From: Amoeboradix gromovi X-113
Taxonomy: Eukaryota; Fungi; Sanchytriomycota
Direction of reading: 5' to 3'
Assembly: GCA_018985225.1 (NCBI GenBank)
Contig: JADGIF010000361.1
Span: 1-10,100 of the forward strand
Length of the DNA stretch: 10,100 bases
Positions within the stretch are counted from its first letter, which is position 1. The number at the start of each line of letters is the position of its first letter. Shown here one piece after another: positions 2,852-10,100 of the stretch. Under the pieces are notes generated by a model. The model saw only the letters and a list, made by a program, of their open reading frames with translations, searched no databases and was not told the DNA's origin. The position numbers were made by a program, and so were the translations under genes.

Positions 2852-3412
2852 CTATTTACTTTTATTTTTAATTTTCCAAAAGTTGCCAATTTTAAAAATT
2901 CTATCTTTACTAAAAGTAAATGGAAATTTTTCTGAGTTTAACATAACCATTGTGTACGAAAAAAGTAAAACCTTATTCCAAAGAATTCCCATAACAGTAC
3001 CAACTATTGCTCCAATTACTAGTTGATCGACATGATGGTAACTCAGGTAATATCTGCTATATACAACAATTGCTGAAAGTGGCAAAGATTTGTATCCGCC
3101 CCAAACAACCGTATAAAAGGCCATGAACCCAGAATGAGCACTTGGTAAACCATAACCAATATTGAAGTTTTCATCATGCCCAGGGTGGTAGGGTCTTGGT
3201 ATCTTGAGGTAGTTCTTTATTAAGCTATTAATACCCTCGTTAATAATATGGCCTGCTAATATCAATAAAATAGTAATATCTTTTAAGTGGACAAACGAAA
3301 AAACTAAATGAGATATCAGTAAGATCGGAAACAGCGAGAAATAAGCTAATATTTTACAGGATGCACATCCTACTTCATACAGCACGTATGAATGATAAAC
3401 TGGTGAATACAT
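2852..3412 (-). CDS. DOLPP1: PAP2-family dolichyl-diphosphatase (DOLPP1/Cax4-like), 186 aa
   Basis: PAP2 motifs KxxxxxPRP, GYGLPSAHS and SRYYLSYHHVDQ. The N-terminal 'YVLYE...LAYFSLFP' and 'GHIINEGIN' segments are typical of DOLPP1/Cax4. Confidence 0.88.
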   Translation of the reverse strand: MYSPVYHSYVLYEVGCASCKILAYFSLFPILLISHLVFSFVHLKDITILLILAGHIINEGINSLIKNYLKIPRPYHPGHDENFNIGYGLPSAHSGFMAFYTVVWGGYKSLPLSAIVVYSRYYLSYHHVDQLVIGAIVGTVMGILWNKVLLFSYTMVMLNSEKFPFTFSKDRIFKIGNFWKIKNKSK

Positions 3413-3712
3413 AGGGGATATGCGACAGACTTCAGAAAATTAACCTACTATAAGTGGGGGTACTCCGTAGTCCCATTATTGTAACTTTTCAGGCTTTTTT
3501 GTGCCAAGTTTCTCATTCCTAGACAAACAAATGAGCTTCAAATTTTCCATATTTATAGTATTGCTATCCCTAATCGAAGGTCTGGCATAGTGTTAACAAG
3601 TCCAATATCCTTGATAAGTTTGCTACTACTATTGTGATTTCTAGAAAAGATCACATTAAAATCGAATAAAATAATGGACTGCAAGTATTTACTGAATTTA
3701 AAATCTAATTAG

Positions 3713-4143
3713 TTATTCGAATTGGCCTCTAAATAAACTAGTTATTACCTTAAACGTCTCACAAGATCCAGGTCACGCTTCATAAGTGTGACTCTTTTAG
3801 AATGAATCGCACAAAGCATGCTATCTTCGAATAGAGTAACCAAGTATGCCTCAGCAGCTTCTTGCAATGCCATTAAAGCACCAGCCTGCCATCTATACTC
3901 TTGATGCTGAAAAATACCTTCTTTTTGAACGCTGGCTGCCAACTGCCTACACAAACGGCCAAATGGAGCTTTCCTTATTAATAAGTTTGTAGACTTTTGA
4001 TACTTTCTTATCTCCTGTAGTGCTCTTGTTCCCGGTTTAAACCGATGCGCCTTCTTTGGGCTGATCTTTTTTCTAGGCGAAGTGTGTCTTTTTGTAGACA
4101 TGTACTTCATTCTGTCTTGCAATGATGGGACTTTTGGCGCCAT
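3713..4143 (-). CDS. CSE4: Centromeric histone H3 variant CenH3/CENP-A/Cse4; two exons (4143-3749, 3728-3713), 136 aa
   Basis: H3 fold ([19 protein letters not shown]...[16 protein letters not shown]) with CenH3 hallmarks: unrelated N-tail, G in place of H3 Q68, W in place of F84, S in place of T107, and loop 1 seven residues longer. Splicing 3748-3729 gives the ending RRLRGQFE*, compared with yeast Cse4 RRIRGQFI*. Confidence 0.9.
3729..3748 (-). other. Predicted 20-nt spliceosomal intron in CenH3
   Basis: AG|GTAATAACTAGTTTATTTAG|A on the minus strand. It contains the in-frame stops, and its removal restores the conserved R-G-Q-F tail. Confidence 0.85.
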
Positions 4144-4321
4144 TATTAACTGATATGTTGTTTCAGGGAAATTTACATAATTTCTGCAATAACAGGCAAT
4201 AAATTAGAACCTACATGGTGCTCAATATGGCATACCAGAGAAAGCAGAATCAAACAAACTTAAAGCAATATAAATATATCTTGATGACACGTCGTGCAAG
4301 TTAAAACAAGTGAATATTAAA
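4144..4321. promoter_or_regulatory. Probable shared divergent promoter region of CenH3 and the membrane-WASP gene
   Basis: 178-bp spacer between head-to-head ATGs. Inferred from gene layout only. Confidence 0.5.
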
Positions 4322-7300
4322 ATGAGCTTTGGTTATATCAATGACACTTCTCTAACCACTTTGAGTATCAATTTCTCCCCTATTAGTAACGGCTTTGCAT
4401 TAGTATACGGTGTTAATGCCTTGATTAAGGTGGAAAAACCTCAGAACAGTTTTTCGGATTTTATCAAGCTAGATAGCCCCGGTCAAGTCATTTCCCAGTT
4501 CAGCCCATCGGGGTCAGTAACTTGGCTTACTGTATGCTCTCCGGGGTATTATCCAAAGGATGGAATATTTCCTGCTAGTTCTTGTTTGCCTTGCCCGAAC
4601 TATTCCAGTTCTTCGATGCTCATGAAAAGTTGTGAATGCCTAGAAGGCTACTATAGTTTGCTGGATGCCAGCAGTTCTGCCTATTATAGCGATATAATAT
4701 CTAACAAACAACAATGTGTATCTTGTCGCCCTGGTACTAGTTGCTCACACGGTATAGGTTCTGTAAATGATAACGTATTACAGCTTAAATCGGATAATGT
4801 GCTGTGTGAGTCTGGCTGTCAGAATGGTATTTGCACTTTTCCATACAAGGGTGATTTTTGTTCCGAATGTGCTGCCGAACATTATAAATTCAACAGAACC
4901 TGTTTAAATTGCGACAATAGTGGATTGTATTTGGCTATTTTATTTTTATGTCTTCTATTCTCTCCGTTAGTCTTGTATTTCATTTTTAAAGCCTGGAAGA
5001 AGATGCTAACAGTAAGTATTGGATTGTTTTTCATACAAGAACTCGCTCTAGTATTATACACAGATGTTTTATTTTCCAATTTCCAATCTCAGTTACGGTA
5101 TTTAGGATTGGTGATGTTTGATGTTGGCTGGTCAAAGCTGGAATGCTTTTCAAATTCTCAAATCACTTTCATATTTCCGATGTTTATTCTACCGCTTGTT
5201 TACTTTTTTGAACTGTTTTGGAAAATGTCTTTTTTCGGTATAAGTAAGACTGCAAAACGGAATCATGAATTGAAAAAGATAATCAGTTATTCGCAGCCTC
5301 GTAGCCTACTCATTTTAATGGAAATCTTGTACTTTCCAATACTTGTCGGACTTGCCAGATTAGGCACTTGTAAGTCATTTTCTACCGGCGGTTTTGTATG
5401 GCAGTGTCCCAATTTTGCAACCGCGCTACTACTTTTTCTTGGGTTTGGCATAATGGTACCTTGTATTCATATTTTGGCGCGAATATACTTAAAGAATCGA
5501 AAGGAGAAGCTGAAAATGATTAAAGCGAATGAGTCAAAGAATGTTAAACAAACAGTCGCTTGGCCTAGAAACACAACTTCCTCTACATTTGTAGGTAAAT
5601 ACAAAACCTCCTCTAACCATCCTTTAATTCTCTCATTTCAATATTTAAAAAGATTTGCAATTGCTGCATTTTGGTTTGGTTCTAGCAGTTGGGGTCCAAT
5701 TACTCAGCTATGGTCAGTTGCAATGATTGAAGCATTTGCTGCACTGTGGTTGACAGTATGTTTTACATCTGTATATAGAGGTAAAATGGGAAAAATAGCA
5801 ATGTTTTTGCAAGCTTGTACCCTAACAATAGCCAGTTCTTTCTACTTGACGACGTCTATTCAGCCGCCACTGTATGCACCACTTGTTGACCAGGATGCTT
5901 TGCAATATGAGATGATGCCGTTTCTTGTTGGGTCGGTGTTTTCAGTTCTCTTTTTGATTTTGTTTGAACATTTCTACGTTTACTTTAACAAATCTGATCC
6001 AGCTTTGTATCGTAAGCCAATAAAGCCGAATCATTCAAAAATAATGGAAATTGTAGACAAAAGAGATAAAGTGGGAATGCAAAGCGATTTACAAAAATTT
6101 GTTCAGGTCAAGATTGACGAAGATGGTAACAAAAAGAATGTTGTTTATTTAACTCGAAGAGCACTACAAACCATGCAGCGAGGCGTTCAGGATGACGACG
6201 AAGATAGCGAAGAGCTCTTGCCAGAGAATGAGGTTAAGCCACACTTACAAGGCAATATTATTGTTGCTGTTGCGCATACTGAGGTAGAAAAGAAAGACAC
6301 CCTATTGAGAATGATTCAAAAAATGGATGTTCGTGACGAGCCCGCTTTAAATCCAGAGGATGGTGATAAAAGGGAATCCAGAGAGACGCCGTATTCATCT
6401 ACTGGTCTGCGGGTATCTAAAATACCAACCCAGGATGAAGAAACAAATAAAGATAATGTGAGGGTATCAAAGTTGTCTGGTGATGATAGTTTGGTACCAG
6501 ATAAGAACAATAATCATAATAAATATATGCAAAAAGATGAGTCTGAAAAGGGGCTCATGCATTCCCAAGAACTTTCTGAATCGCGACTAGATCAACTCAA
6601 GTCTTCAAACAAGTCTAGAAGCAATTCAATGGAACGCAAGACAAGCTTCTTCAGTAAATTTACAAAATCAAAAGATGAGGAAAGTGATAGAATAGGTAAG
6701 CCAACCAATTTCAAGCACACTGGACATTTAGGAGCCAGTAACATAATGCTTGATTCATTGCCTGATGCATATAAAGAAATAATTGAAAAGGCTGGAGTTA
6801 GTTCAGAAGATTTAAAAGATCCAGAAACATTTAGATTTATTATTGAATTTATTGTCAAAAAGTCAAGCGGCACTGTTAAGAGAGTAGTAACCGCAAATGA
6901 AAATGGCAAAAAGCAATTGTACATTGAACCTAGTATAGACAACTCTCTTAATTCTGAGAACAGTTTAATTGCTGTAAATATAATATCTCCTACTTTGATC
7001 AGGAACGACCAAGAGCAGGCTCAAATAGAAGCAGCTGATAATGCAAAGCAGTCAAAGGAATTACAATCCAAGGATTCATTGCAAGGCTTGATTAACGAGG
7101 TCTCAGTTGACATACAGTCTTCCCAGGTACAAAATGAATCATCTAAAGATCTACCAGATTTAGCTTTAACACATTCAGAGTCTCCAATTCAAGAGAATAT
7201 AGCCTTAACACATTCAGAGTCTCCAATTCAAGAGAATATAGCGTTAACACATTCAGAGTCTTCAATTCAAGAGAATATAGCAGTTCCACCTCCCCCACCT

Positions 7301-7655
7301 GCTCCACTGCTTAATACCGTTAATCTAAAGTCTAATGAGTCTAGGTCATCGGACATGTTGTCATCTATACAGAACATTCAACTGAAGAGTGCATCTTCAA
7401 TAAATAAGCTCCCCATTCCTAGGAATCTACTATTAGAACAAATCAAATCAGGTGCTAAACTTAAATCGGTATTATTCATTAATGTAGAACCTCACTGCGC
7501 CTATACAAAATAACTCACTGTCACCGAGTGTATCTGTTTCGAATAAACCAGATATTGCCAATGCGTTAGCTGAAGCATTAAAAGGTAGGAAAATGAAAAT
7601 GAAAGATGACAGCAACAGCAGCTTAGAAAAAGGTGATCCTGACGACTGGGAGTAG
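4322..7655 (+). CDS. Cys-rich ectodomain / multi-pass membrane protein fused to a WASP-type CRIB(GBD)-polyPro-WH2-WH2-C-A module; two exons (4322-7468, 7488-7655), 1104 aa
   Basis: Uninterrupted frame. Cys-rich repeats at 4535-4912 (CxPGYY, CxxC); about 9 hydrophobic helices at 4925-5986; CRIB IGKPTNFKHTGHLG at 6692-6733; WASP GBD helices LPDAYKEIIEKAGVSSEDLKDPETFRFIIEFI at 6758-6853; PPPPPAP at 7286-7306; WH2s at about 7340-7393 and 7418-7468. Exon 2 encodes DIANALAEALKGRKMKM...GDPDDWE*. The 5' end is uncertain (ORF-track start 4310 is GTG; first ATG is 4322). Confidence 0.88.
7161..7281 (+). repeat. In-frame 39-bp tandem repeat, about 3.1 copies (ALTHSESPIQENI)
   Basis: Units at 7161-7199, 7200-7238 and 7239-7277, plus TAGC. 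They differ only at the Ala wobble base and one C>T (P>S). Confidence 0.97.
7469..7487 (+). other. Predicted 19-nt spliceosomal intron between WH2 and the Central/Acidic exon
   Basis: CG|GTATTATTCATTAATGTAG|AA, phase 0, with branch-like TTAAT just before the AG. Removal shifts the frame exactly onto the C-helix and DDWE*. Confidence 0.85.
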
Positions 7656-7658
7656 CGA

Positions 7659-9977
7659 TCAAAACTCTTTATTAATAAAATCATACAGCTCATCTCCATT
7701 CTGTTTCCCCAATATTGTCCTCAATTTAGTTTTACTTGCACCTAATATTTGTAGCACTGTTTGGTACTCCTTTATCAGCTTCTTGTAGTTAAAACTGTTG
7801 ACGCCTGGCATTGATTGTACAAAATCAGCTCCACTGGCTACATCACTTTCATTACCAACATTTTTTGCTGTATCTACTTCTGGCTCTTGTTTATTTATCT
7901 TCAATAACTCAAATAACTTGGCACTAAACTCAGTGTCAGGTGACATGTATATTTGAAGTTTGGGAAAATAATGCATTAACACTGTTACTTTGCCTAATGC
8001 ATTGTACTTCATGAGATATTGCACTCGCAGTGATCTAGATTCTGTGAATTCAATCAGCAATATGGGAAACTCGTAGTTTAAACACAACTGCTGTGCTTGA
8101 TAGTACAATCTACCTGAGTTCAAGCTGCTTATTAAGTCAGATACTACTTTACGCTCCACTGCCATGTTTGGGGCTAATATATAGTCCCCAACATTCAGTG
8201 TAACAGCTGATAGTTTAAAATTGCGATTGAACAAAGAAAGTGGCAACCTACTTCTAAACTCACGCACGTCTACAATAACACACCTTTCTTTAGACTGTCC
8301 ACCAGCTATTCTTGTTGTTGCGTTCTGGTCTAACAGGTGCATAGCTTGAATTGGAACCGCTAGTCGTTCCTGGTCTATTATCAATTTATGAAAGGCATCC
8401 TTCTCCCTTCGTACATCCATCAAGCATTGCTGCTCTTCTTGGGATTCCTTGATCGTTAAAACATGGATTGTTATGTTTTCATTCAATGTGCAATATACCT
8501 CAACTAATCGAAGTGCGTACAAACTAGGATGATAGAGTATTATTTGTTGTGGCTTTATTATTGACAATTGCTCAATAGTCTTTAAATCATTAACGTTTTC
8601 AATAACGGCATTGAGATTCTCTCTACCTTCTTCTAGTTCTATTAGATCCATCTCTATACCTTCATGTACGATTTGGCTACCGACACTGTTTGACATCAAA
8701 TTGGTACCTCTCAATCTTCTTCGTTTATTAGTTCTTGCTTTTTCTGCAACAGGATGGCTTTGAGAAACAATTTTATTCTTTTCCAATTCACCCCTTTCTT
8801 TGAAGTAGTATCCTAGTTTAAACAGCATTAAGAGATTGATTGATTTATCGCCAATGACTACATTTGGCTGAGTTAAGTATTTACGTAAATAAATAGTAGT
8901 ACTCGTTGAATCTGTCAGTATTAATGTCTTTTGGTCAGTCAATATGTTTGAAATACAAGCCCATTTGCAATTTTCCTTTAGCACAGGTGCAACATTCAGT
9001 GGTAACTTGTATGTAATGTTATTATGTTTGTAGTGAATACTAGGACCTAAGCGTTTAATGTATACGCGGTCTTTGGCTTTAGAGTGTATTTGGGTAGCAC
9101 AGAAATGCGTAGTCCAACTGGCTTTGACGGTCATTGCATTGACGTGGGATTCAAAATATTTTAAAAATGAAATGCAATCATAGTCATAAAGATAGCTTAA
9201 CAAATGCTTAAAAAACTTGATTTCTTCAATTGCTAGTTGAGAAGAATCAGACAGCTTGTAATCGTTGGGTTCCAGTTCCTGCTTTAAAAGAAATTCAAAG
9301 TTTGAAGTTAAACTCTTTTCAAGAGTAATTTCAGTAGGATCTATCCATCTGCAGCTGCTTTTAAGGTCGCTGATAACTATCTGTAAGCAATCTCTTATGC
9401 AATGCTCAATATCCAGTAAATCCTTCTGAACTGGAATAGAATGCTCTTCAATAAATAGTTTTTTTAATCCATCATTTACAGCATCCCTGTATCTAGGATA
9501 TAGAAAGAGATTTTGTAGATACAGACTGCTCAGCATTCTTTCTATTTTGTTGAAACCAAACACAAATTTTTCTGGATTTTGAGAGAATCCTTTGATAGAC
9601 GGAGTAGTGTGCTGGTGAATAAGCTTCAGTATAAAGTGCTCAGTACTAGACTCAGTCACTTTATCTGCTTCCAATACCAGAACACATTTTATCAATTTAA
9701 AATCAATCACATTGTTTATTAAATCAGTAATTAGAATGCGGGAGGTAATTGAACAAACACCGCCCGATTGATATATTTTGCATCGATTCTTTATGTTGAT
9801 ATCGTTTGTAATCGCAGGGTTGGAGTGATTTAATATAAACACCAGATACTGACCTTCGTAACTTAATTTTGATATATACTCGTTGATTATAATATCAATG
9901 CCTAAACCTTTTGCTAATATCAATAATCCGTCCTCTTTTTGCAGCTCCTCAACAATTGTAGAGTGTAGTGCAAGCAT
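7659..9977 (-). CDS. ERCC4: DNA repair endonuclease XPF/ERCC4/Rad1/Rad16, about 772 aa
   Basis: Helicase-like N-terminus (GLLILAKGLG; GGVCSITSRILITDL; LYPRY), nuclease motifs VDVREFRS, GDYIL and ERKxxxD...SLNSGRLY, and a C-terminal HhH2 (MPGV). The ORF-track start 10037 is TTG; ATG 9977 best matches where XPF homology begins, and ATG 10022 is an alternative. Confidence 0.95.
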   Translation of the reverse strand: MLALHSTIVEELQKEDGLLILAKGLGIDIIINEYISKLSYEGQYLVFILNHSNPAITNDINIKNRCKIYQSGGVCSITSRILITDLINNVIDFKLIKCVLVLEADKVTESSTEHFILKLIHQHTTPSIKGFSQNPEKFVFGFNKIERMLSSLYLQNLFLYPRYRDAVNDGLKKLFIEEHSIPVQKDLLDIEHCIRDCLQIVISDLKSSCRWIDPTEITLEKSLTSNFEFLLKQELEPNDYKLSDSSQLAIEEIKFFKHLLSYLYDYDCISFLKYFESHVNAMTVKASWTTHFCATQIHSKAKDRVYIKRLGPSIHYKHNNITYKLPLNVAPVLKENCKWACISNILTDQKTLILTDSTSTTIYLRKYLTQPNVVIGDKSINLLMLFKLGYYFKERGELEKNKIVSQSHPVAEKARTNKRRRLRGTNLMSNSVGSQIVHEGIEMDLIELEEGRENLNAVIENVNDLKTIEQLSIIKPQQIILYHPSLYALRLVEVYCTLNENITIHVLTIKESQEEQQCLMDVRREKDAFHKLIIDQERLAVPIQAMHLLDQNATTRIAGGQSKERCVIVDVREFRSRLPLSLFNRNFKLSAVTLNVGDYILAPNMAVERKVVSDLISSLNSGRLYYQAQQLCLNYEFPILLIEFTESRSLRVQYLMKYNALGKVTVLMHYFPKLQIYMSPDTEFSAKLFELLKINKQEPEVDTAKNVGNESDVASGADFVQSMPGVNSFNYKKLIKEYQTVLQILGASKTKLRTILGKQNGDELYDFINKEF
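7668..7679. terminator. Candidate bidirectional polyadenylation signal (palindrome TTTATTAATAAA)
   Basis: Perfect 12-bp palindrome giving AATAAA on + (7674-7679) and on - (7673-7668), next to two convergent stop codons. Function is inferred. Confidence 0.5.
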
Positions 9978-10100
9978 TATACTTATCTGAGGCAAGCGGA
10001 GAATCGAGTAATTTGTTGGCATTAAATGGGACACCAAATATAAAAACTAGACTAACTCGTTTTTAAAGGAGGTGCTCCATACGGAGGAAATGCTATCATT

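Follow-up and report, generated by a model that had tools for sequence, protein, structure and literature searches.

Can a WASP-family activator of the Arp2/3 complex be built into the membrane, in one chain with a receptor-like module? The question is raised by a gene at positions 4322-7655 of the stretch of DNA analyzed here, 10,100 nucleotides (nt) of contig JADGIF010000361.1 from the sanchytrid fungus Amoeboradix gromovi X-113 (assembly GCA_018985225.1), which we refer to as the window. From an ATG at 4322, a stop-free frame runs to 7510 and encodes a Cys-rich stalk, nine transmembrane (TM) helices, a GTPase-binding domain (GBD), and two WH2 motifs. Removal of a 19-nt GT-AG intron adds a second exon and yields a predicted product of 1104 amino acids (aa) with an acidic, Trp-containing end. 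We consider it reasonably probable, from sequence comparison, that this product is an integral-membrane Arp2/3 activator of the WASP family, in which a nine-helix module resembling those of CRMP and Pkd2 proteins stands in place of the WH1 domain.

Integrity of the fused gene

That the two halves form a single gene in this clade appears nearly certain. Two orthologues from ENA metagenomes, P0002 (51% identity) and P0003 (42%), carry the whole fusion in one frame, and in both loci it lies between the same CENP-A and XPF genes that flank it in the window (CENP-A, 3745-4143, and XPF/ERCC4, 7659-10037, both on the minus strand). Each orthologue is present in two assemblies as near-identical variants, which we counted as two species and not as four observations. 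Codon positions 1-2 are better kept than position 3, with values of 0.61-0.80 versus 0.38-0.43 in the TM module and 0.73-0.76 versus 0.40-0.50 in the GBD, and the same holds for the ectodomain, a linker block (aa 591-680), and the WH2 region; judged by these positions, both halves are under purifying selection. The retention of the fusion in two relatives, the synteny, the common intron site, and the selection on both halves argue that the gene is not a mis-join. Mis-assembly as a source of the fusion was ruled out by the same stop-free fusion in the two other species and by a Logan contig that spans 3700-7195 unbroken, across the TM/WASP junction, although the read run behind the Logan contigs is probably the source of the assembly and hence not independent support. 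These contigs differ from the window at two single bases, 6943 and 7499. The features of the locus (GC content, 35.8%) are as follows.

4322-7468 (+): exon 1 (aa 1-1049), with ectodomain, nine-TM module, linker, GBD, polyproline, and two WH2 motifs; stop-free frame, colinear with orthologues P0002 and P0003
4322-4534 (+): beta-rich N-terminal piece (aa 1-71) with sequons N7 and N17 and no signal peptide; strands in the model, conserved start
4535-4912 (+): Cys-rich stalk of the ephrin-receptor-like/DUF7630 type (aa 72-197) with invariant sequon N191; 13 invariant Cys, profile match to Ephrin_rec_like/DUF7630 proteins
4931-5980 (+): nine-helix membrane module (aa 204-553), N-out/C-in, with invariant outer-loop Cys 275, 350, and 362; hydropathy, model, Lys/Arg alternation, hhalign, and Atlas shape matches
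6092-6361 (+): conserved cytosolic segment (aa 591-680), a predicted hairpin and two helices; 38% invariant, on par with the TM module
6635-6670 (+): basic/aromatic motif 5' of the CRIB; kept in four genes
6692-6730 (+): CRIB motif (aa 791-803); Pfam PBD above cut-off, with Ile, Pro, and both His invariant
6749-6865 (+): WASP autoinhibitory helices (WAID, aa 810-848); align to N-WASP/WASP GBD structures, inside the most conserved block
7161-7281 (+): species-specific 39-nt tandem repeat (3.1 copies), in frame; repeat analysis, Logan contigs break here
7286-7306 (+): short polyproline run (five Pro); translation and orthologue alignment
7355-7393 (+): WH2 motif 1 (starts at aa 1012); pattern and Pfam profile evidence
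7421-7468 (+): WH2 motif 2 (starts at aa 1037), ending at the intron; pattern evidence
7469-7487 (+): 19-nt GT-AG intron, phase 0, A at -6; position shared with four related genes
7488-7655 (+): exon 2 (55 aa), with the Central (C) helix at 7551-7592 and the acidic Trp end at 7608-7652; kept in five genes

An earlier note on this DNA, made from the letters alone, had proposed this layout, and the single frame joining a Cys-rich region, helices, and a WASP module is indeed what we find; the charged linker that it put at roughly 230 aa measures about 237 aa from TM9 to the CRIB. The 39-nt repeat-unit contig has a depth of 48.7, compared with 12-13 in its flanks, so the real number of copies may be closer to four.

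Further examples of the fusion were sought in several collections. A GBD word search recovered the three fusions only, and word-index searches recovered these and two distant proteins, being too insensitive to judge whether the clade has a canonical WH1-WASP. Scans of JGI metagenomes gave no further fusion and at most two distant family loci without a VCA region (the WH2s, C helix, and acidic end). NCBIfam gave no match, and the Atlas held no large cluster combining these parts.

The membrane half

In the stalk, 13 of the 15 Cys residues at aa 72-197 are invariant across the three orthologues. For the helices that follow, which the earlier note had counted as about nine, hydropathy gives eight strong peaks, and an AlphaFold model of the membrane half (pLDDT 69) adds a helix at about aa 434-456, so that the stretch of aa 200-558 holds nine long membrane helices. 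The numbers of Lys and Arg along the successive loops and the tail alternate (3, 2, 6, 1, 11, 0, 3, 0, 6); those of the last three segments suffice to put the tail in the cytosol, and the invariant N191 sequon and Cys 275, 350, and 362 all map to the outer side. Judged by this alternation and the odd number of helices, the protein is N-out/C-in and its WASP tail is cytosolic, as had been proposed. The start, MxFG[YF], is conserved in three of three orthologues. An upstream exon encoding a signal peptide was rejected: no candidate was reachable with one tiny intron, and the gap from the start to CENP-A is only 150-210 nt.

An exhaustive search returned the three fusions first and then distant proteins at E values of 1e-8 to 1e-3. 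These distant relatives carry Ephrin_rec_like or DUF7630 repeats, with weak PF06011 matches in two. When the stalk through TM8 was aligned with this distant family by hhalign, the score was 99.7%, with E = 3.5e-26 over 391 columns. Shape matches in the Atlas gave TM-scores of 0.55-0.60 for stalk/nine-TM clusters and a borderline 0.48 for a fungal (ascomycete, ML-like) Pkd2/Flc cluster of PF06011. A G protein-coupled receptor or solved channel fold was rejected, as Foldseek gave no significant match for the membrane module among solved structures and VIA returned nothing beyond generic helical bundles (Z up to 9.4). On these profile and shape comparisons, the module is a member of a widespread group with an ephrin-like stalk and nine TM helices that resembles the CRMPs and fungal Pkd2/Flc proteins. 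We note that in three loci (L008, L009, and L011) members of this group immediately follow large arrays of the TIG, cadherin-like, or SRCR type, which are probably those members' own ectodomains, split off in annotation; the adjoining arrays lend support to an adhesion-receptor role for the stalk/nine-TM family.

The likeness to CRMPs and Pkd2 was drawn by layout and shape, and it offers a lead as to how the module might work, not a claim of membership. In the available parts of two reports (PMC9815656, PMC9670195), the CRMPs of apicomplexans and ciliates have ephrin-receptor-like/EGF-like Cys repeats followed by nine helices, with an N-out/C-in topology shown for TgCRMPa; they are needed for rhoptry discharge and have been proposed to be host-contact sensors, with a predicted TM heterodimer. 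The order of repeats and helices, the orientation, and the setting at a parasite surface are shared with the fusion. CRMPs differ in having their own signal peptides, large adhesion ectodomains, and a role in control of exocytosis, and the same parts of these reports (PMC9815656, PMC9670195) mention no actin-activator tail; a CRMP-type signal peptide and large adhesion ectodomain are absent from the fusion, whose ectodomain has 200 aa. Pkd2 of fission yeast has nine helices (10.1101/2022.08.11.503631), and an outer N-terminal domain and a disordered cytosolic tail are also common to the fusion and the Pkd2/Flc proteins. Unlike them, the fusion has a Cys-rich stalk and an added WASP tail, and neither PF06011 nor the ML-like domain (PF14558) gave a Pfam match in it or its orthologues.

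The WASP half and its relatives

The cytosolic half has the order of WASP, N-WASP, and Las17/Wsp1, namely, a basic region, CRIB, autoinhibitory helices, proline run, WH2s, C helix, and acidic Trp, and its WH2s are in tandem as in N-WASP. It differs from these proteins in following a nine-pass membrane module, in lacking WH1 (no Pfam match in the three orthologues or their pieces), and in having a proline region before the VCA that is one short run of five Pro. The earlier note had seen no WH1 either; its poly-Pro is present, but not at the size of a WASP proline-rich domain.

The CRIB and WASP-type GBD helices read from the letters alone are recovered by profiles. Pfam PBD scores above its gathering cut-off at aa 790-836, and the closest PDB match is the N-WASP GBD (E = 2.5e-6), spanning both the CRIB and the autoinhibitory helices. 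The GBD profile matches the N-WASP type at 2.4e-9, compared with 5e-3 for the best PAK; a PAK-type CRIB was rejected, its matches being far weaker and without any to the WAID. The GBD block at aa 766-870 is the most conserved part of the protein (52% invariant), which argues that autoinhibition has been retained. Since the CRIB keeps its Ile, Pro, and both His but has lost the aromatic hairpin after HxxH, GTPase binding is plausible. The hairpin is shortened relative to that of WASP, and an Ile occupies the position of WASP's phosphorylated Tyr.

Both WH2 motifs match a pattern slightly relaxed from that of Kollmar after the data had been seen, with no off-target match in the 13 sequences scanned. 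Both orthologues exceed the cut-off of the Pfam WH2 profile, which this protein does not reach (E = 5e-4). Exon 2 gives the only match in the window to the C-helix and acidic-Trp patterns. Searched alone, it had no significant database match and found no WASP in the PDB, and its identity as the C-A end comes from the motif pattern and from conservation in five genes. The VCA would very likely activate Arp2/3. The linkers around the GBD and VCA are long, variable in length, and largely predicted to be disordered; the block at aa 591-680, modeled at pLDDT 45 and with no fold match, is a candidate clustering or partner site.

The last intron follows the same residue of the second WH2, in phase 0 and with an A at -6, in all three species (19, 21, and 19 nt), in agreement with the 19-nt intron noted earlier. 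The same site carries an intron of 20 nt in a soluble tail-like gene and one of 90 nt in Paraphysoderma. Other splice choices at the 3' end were rejected, as they would remove part of the second WH2 at sites not shared between species.

In one relative, the soluble gene is the immediate downstream neighbor of the fusion (L001 13809-15209; also in L003). It encodes the basic motif, CRIB, WAID, polyproline, one WH2, and C-A, with no TM helix and no WH1. Clade-specific motifs common to this gene and the fusion tail suggest a tandem duplicate of the tail, and it looks like a fungal gene of the WAWH kind.

Outside the clade, the nearest homologue is P0004 (KAI9144647.1) of Paraphysoderma sedebokerense (Blastocladiomycota), whose annotated product has 756 aa and lacks a WASP part. 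A 550-codon frame opens 36 nt after its annotated stop. This frame goes 143 codons without a Met (chance, about 1e-4), is Ser-rich like the annotated P0004 tail, and begins with a branch point and an acceptor. It ends in polyPro-WH2-WH2, after which an intron matching that of the fusion in site and phase leads to two further exons, one for the C helix and one for the acidic Trp; the WH2 pattern had no other match in the loci scanned, and two matches occurred in 0/5000 shuffles. An intron of 66-69 nt would join the two parts in frame, and the gene's other introns are 60-78 nt. Neither of two Paraphysoderma paralogues nor any of five other family loci has a VCA, and in a tree of the TM module (midpoint root; fragments of <200 aa left out) P0004, not its paralogues, groups with the fusions (96/94). 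KAI9144647.1 and the gene called after it (L005 8001-12858) are probably one nine-TM-VCA gene split by annotation. Because a VCA sharing this intron site follows P0004 but neither of its paralogues, the fusion probably predates the split from the Paraphysoderma lineage, and the simplest reading would be one old fusion whose GBD was lost or eroded in Paraphysoderma. The split annotation there and the position of the C-A end behind a 19-21 nt intron show how the fusion came to be overlooked. In the same Paraphysoderma locus, a gene for CYFIP/Sra1, a WAVE complex subunit (L005 1704-7070), lies head to head with the nine-TM-VCA gene about 930 nt away, which may be chance.

Elsewhere in the window are genes for a C2H2 zinc-finger protein (538-942), a divergent radial spoke protein 3 (1091-1807; Pfam E = 7e-22), an HscB/Jac1 co-chaperone (2121-2666), and a PAP2-family phosphatase (2852-3412). 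The radial spoke protein would be of note if the organism's flagellum is non-motile and without a central pair. Gene order upstream of CENP-A differs between the window and L001/L002, and the CENP-A gene has an intron and short last exon (3713-3748, minus strand) that are conserved in all three species.

Function and competing explanations

In WASP, WH1 binds WIP, the autoinhibitory helices hold the VCA, and GTPases and lipids release it (PMC10330494, PMC3298513). By extension from this biochemistry, the WAID helices of the fusion would keep the C helix closed off until Cdc42/Rac-GTP and acidic lipid released it, the WH2s would deliver actin, and C-A would engage Arp2/3, with the activator fixed in the membrane by its nine-TM module instead of being recruited through WIP/verprolin and SH3 adaptors. 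More tentatively, the protein might become clustered when its ectodomain touches a surface or when it pairs with another nine-TM partner, which would concentrate VCA at the contact site and feed growth of pseudopods or filopods, or host attachment, in crawling zoospores. The long, variable, disordered linkers make direct allosteric coupling unlikely, and the membrane part would more likely set the place than flip a switch; we therefore favor control through positioning and clustering, together with a local GTPase. The earlier note had proposed a one-component surface sensor; on our reading, clustering or a GTPase close by would still be required. We lean slightly toward a role in surface contact, and we regard a direct ligand-triggered output as doubtful. 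A fuller proposal, in which the fusion has a single origin, in the ancestor of Sanchytriomycota and Blastocladiomycota, as a contact receptor whose ligand- or surface-driven clustering directly triggers branched actin without WIP or SH3 proteins, and underlies both zoospore crawling and host attachment, is offered tentatively. Amoeboid zoospores occur in both sanchytrids and Paraphysoderma (PMC8371127, PMC6446968): those of sanchytrids crawl with filopodia and a broad pseudopod (PMC8371127), and Paraphysoderma infects by amoeboid swarmers (PMC6446968).

Several observations weigh against an integral-membrane activator acting in this way. No signal peptide was found, which leaves a luminal domain of about 200 aa without one, and the small ectodomain has none of the adhesion arrays carried by many family members. 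The CRMP likeness is one of architecture, set against published descriptions, and the crawling stage of the organism is itself presumed. The aromatic hairpin of the CRIB is lost, and no GBD, including the CRIB, is detectable in the Paraphysoderma gene, so that GTPase gating may be dispensable. In that gene the joining intron is a putative one with a weak donor, and the grouping of P0004 in the tree carries a long-branch warning. No RNA run for the splice was found in the read index searched, so the last splice is a predicted one.

Of the other explanations, the one that survives best, though unlikely, takes the same Arp2/3 activator and makes the membrane module only an address tag or cargo, for endocytic patches or vesicle actin, with no sensing. 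Fungal WASP does act in endocytic patches. Pkd2 internalization is governed by the Pkd2 tail (10.1101/2022.08.11.503631), and the short ectodomain, missing signal peptide, and long, variable linkers would all suit a tag; but 34% of ectodomain residues and 39% of those in the TM core are invariant among the three orthologues, about the same as in the WH2 region, which exceeds what a plain anchor would need. Less probable again is a mechanosensitive or Ca2+-permeable channel of the Pkd2/Flc kind with its own actin activator, turning membrane tension into branched actin. The shape match to the PF06011/ML-like ascomycete cluster, the weak PF06011 matches in relatives, and the nine helices of Pkd2 point that way, whereas the fusion and its orthologues match neither PF06011 nor the ML-like domain, no channel in the PDB matches, and the stalk/nine-TM clusters fit better.

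Were the last intron usually retained, or regulated, the main product would stop after the two WH2s and bind or nucleate actin without Arp2/3; we consider this very unlikely. The unspliced frame does complete an LKSV motif and stop soon after in three of three species, and database entries end at that stop; those ends, however, result from unspliced open reading frame calling, exon 2 is kept in five genes, and the intron has the form (19-21 nt, A at -6) of the conserved CENP-A intron (19-20 nt, A at -6, in three species). An artefact joining two adjacent genes can be dismissed, for although the only matching run is probably the assembly's own source and its contigs are interrupted at the 39-nt repeat, the same stop-free fusion is present in two other species, in two assemblies apiece, and the linker block at aa 591-680 is conserved.

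An integral-membrane WASP-family activator would be set beside two kinds of known system. Listeria ActA, Tir of enteropathogenic Escherichia coli, and vaccinia A36 are membrane-fixed proteins that place Arp2/3 activation at one site. They are pathogen proteins with one or two TM segments acting on host actin, and Tir and A36 recruit N-WASP via adaptors; the fusion, in contrast, is endogenous and has the whole WASP module in the same chain. WASPs without WH1 (WAWH) have been described in amoebae, Apusozoa, and a lizard (Kollmar 2012, PMC3298513), and the fusion shares their layout of GBD, prolines (here the one short run), and VCA, with no WH1. The soluble second gene is WAWH type I by layout, whereas the fusion differs from types I-III in its nine TM helices and, compared by description, is probably an independent, fungal loss of WH1. 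That survey, which covers about 1000 WASP-family proteins, does not use the word "transmembrane" in its main text (PMC3298513), and our literature search on sanchytrid WASP and multi-pass nucleation-promoting factors, whose coverage left out most subscription papers, found nothing relevant. The earlier note's statement that it knew of no described eukaryotic multi-pass WASP stands as far as this literature goes; it had overlooked the WH1-less WASPs and the CRMP and Pkd2/Flc analogues.

Subfamilies of the WASP family are defined by their N-terminal targeting module, and we found none described with a multi-pass membrane module; WH1-less WASPs are already known, and the fusion would in effect be a new subfamily and, if the reading is true, one with receptor, adaptor, and activator as one chain. 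As a minimal system, it would lend itself to asking if clustering in the membrane is by itself enough to activate Arp2/3, and it would link a widespread orphan family of nine-TM proteins, CRMP-like and Pkd2-like, to a measurable output, the first intrinsic one if true. For the organism, such a protein might allow actin to be assembled at the very spot where the cell surface touches something, and it is a candidate for the crawling and attachment of algal parasites that gave up swimming, a candidacy that extends to Paraphysoderma, a pest of Haematococcus cultures.

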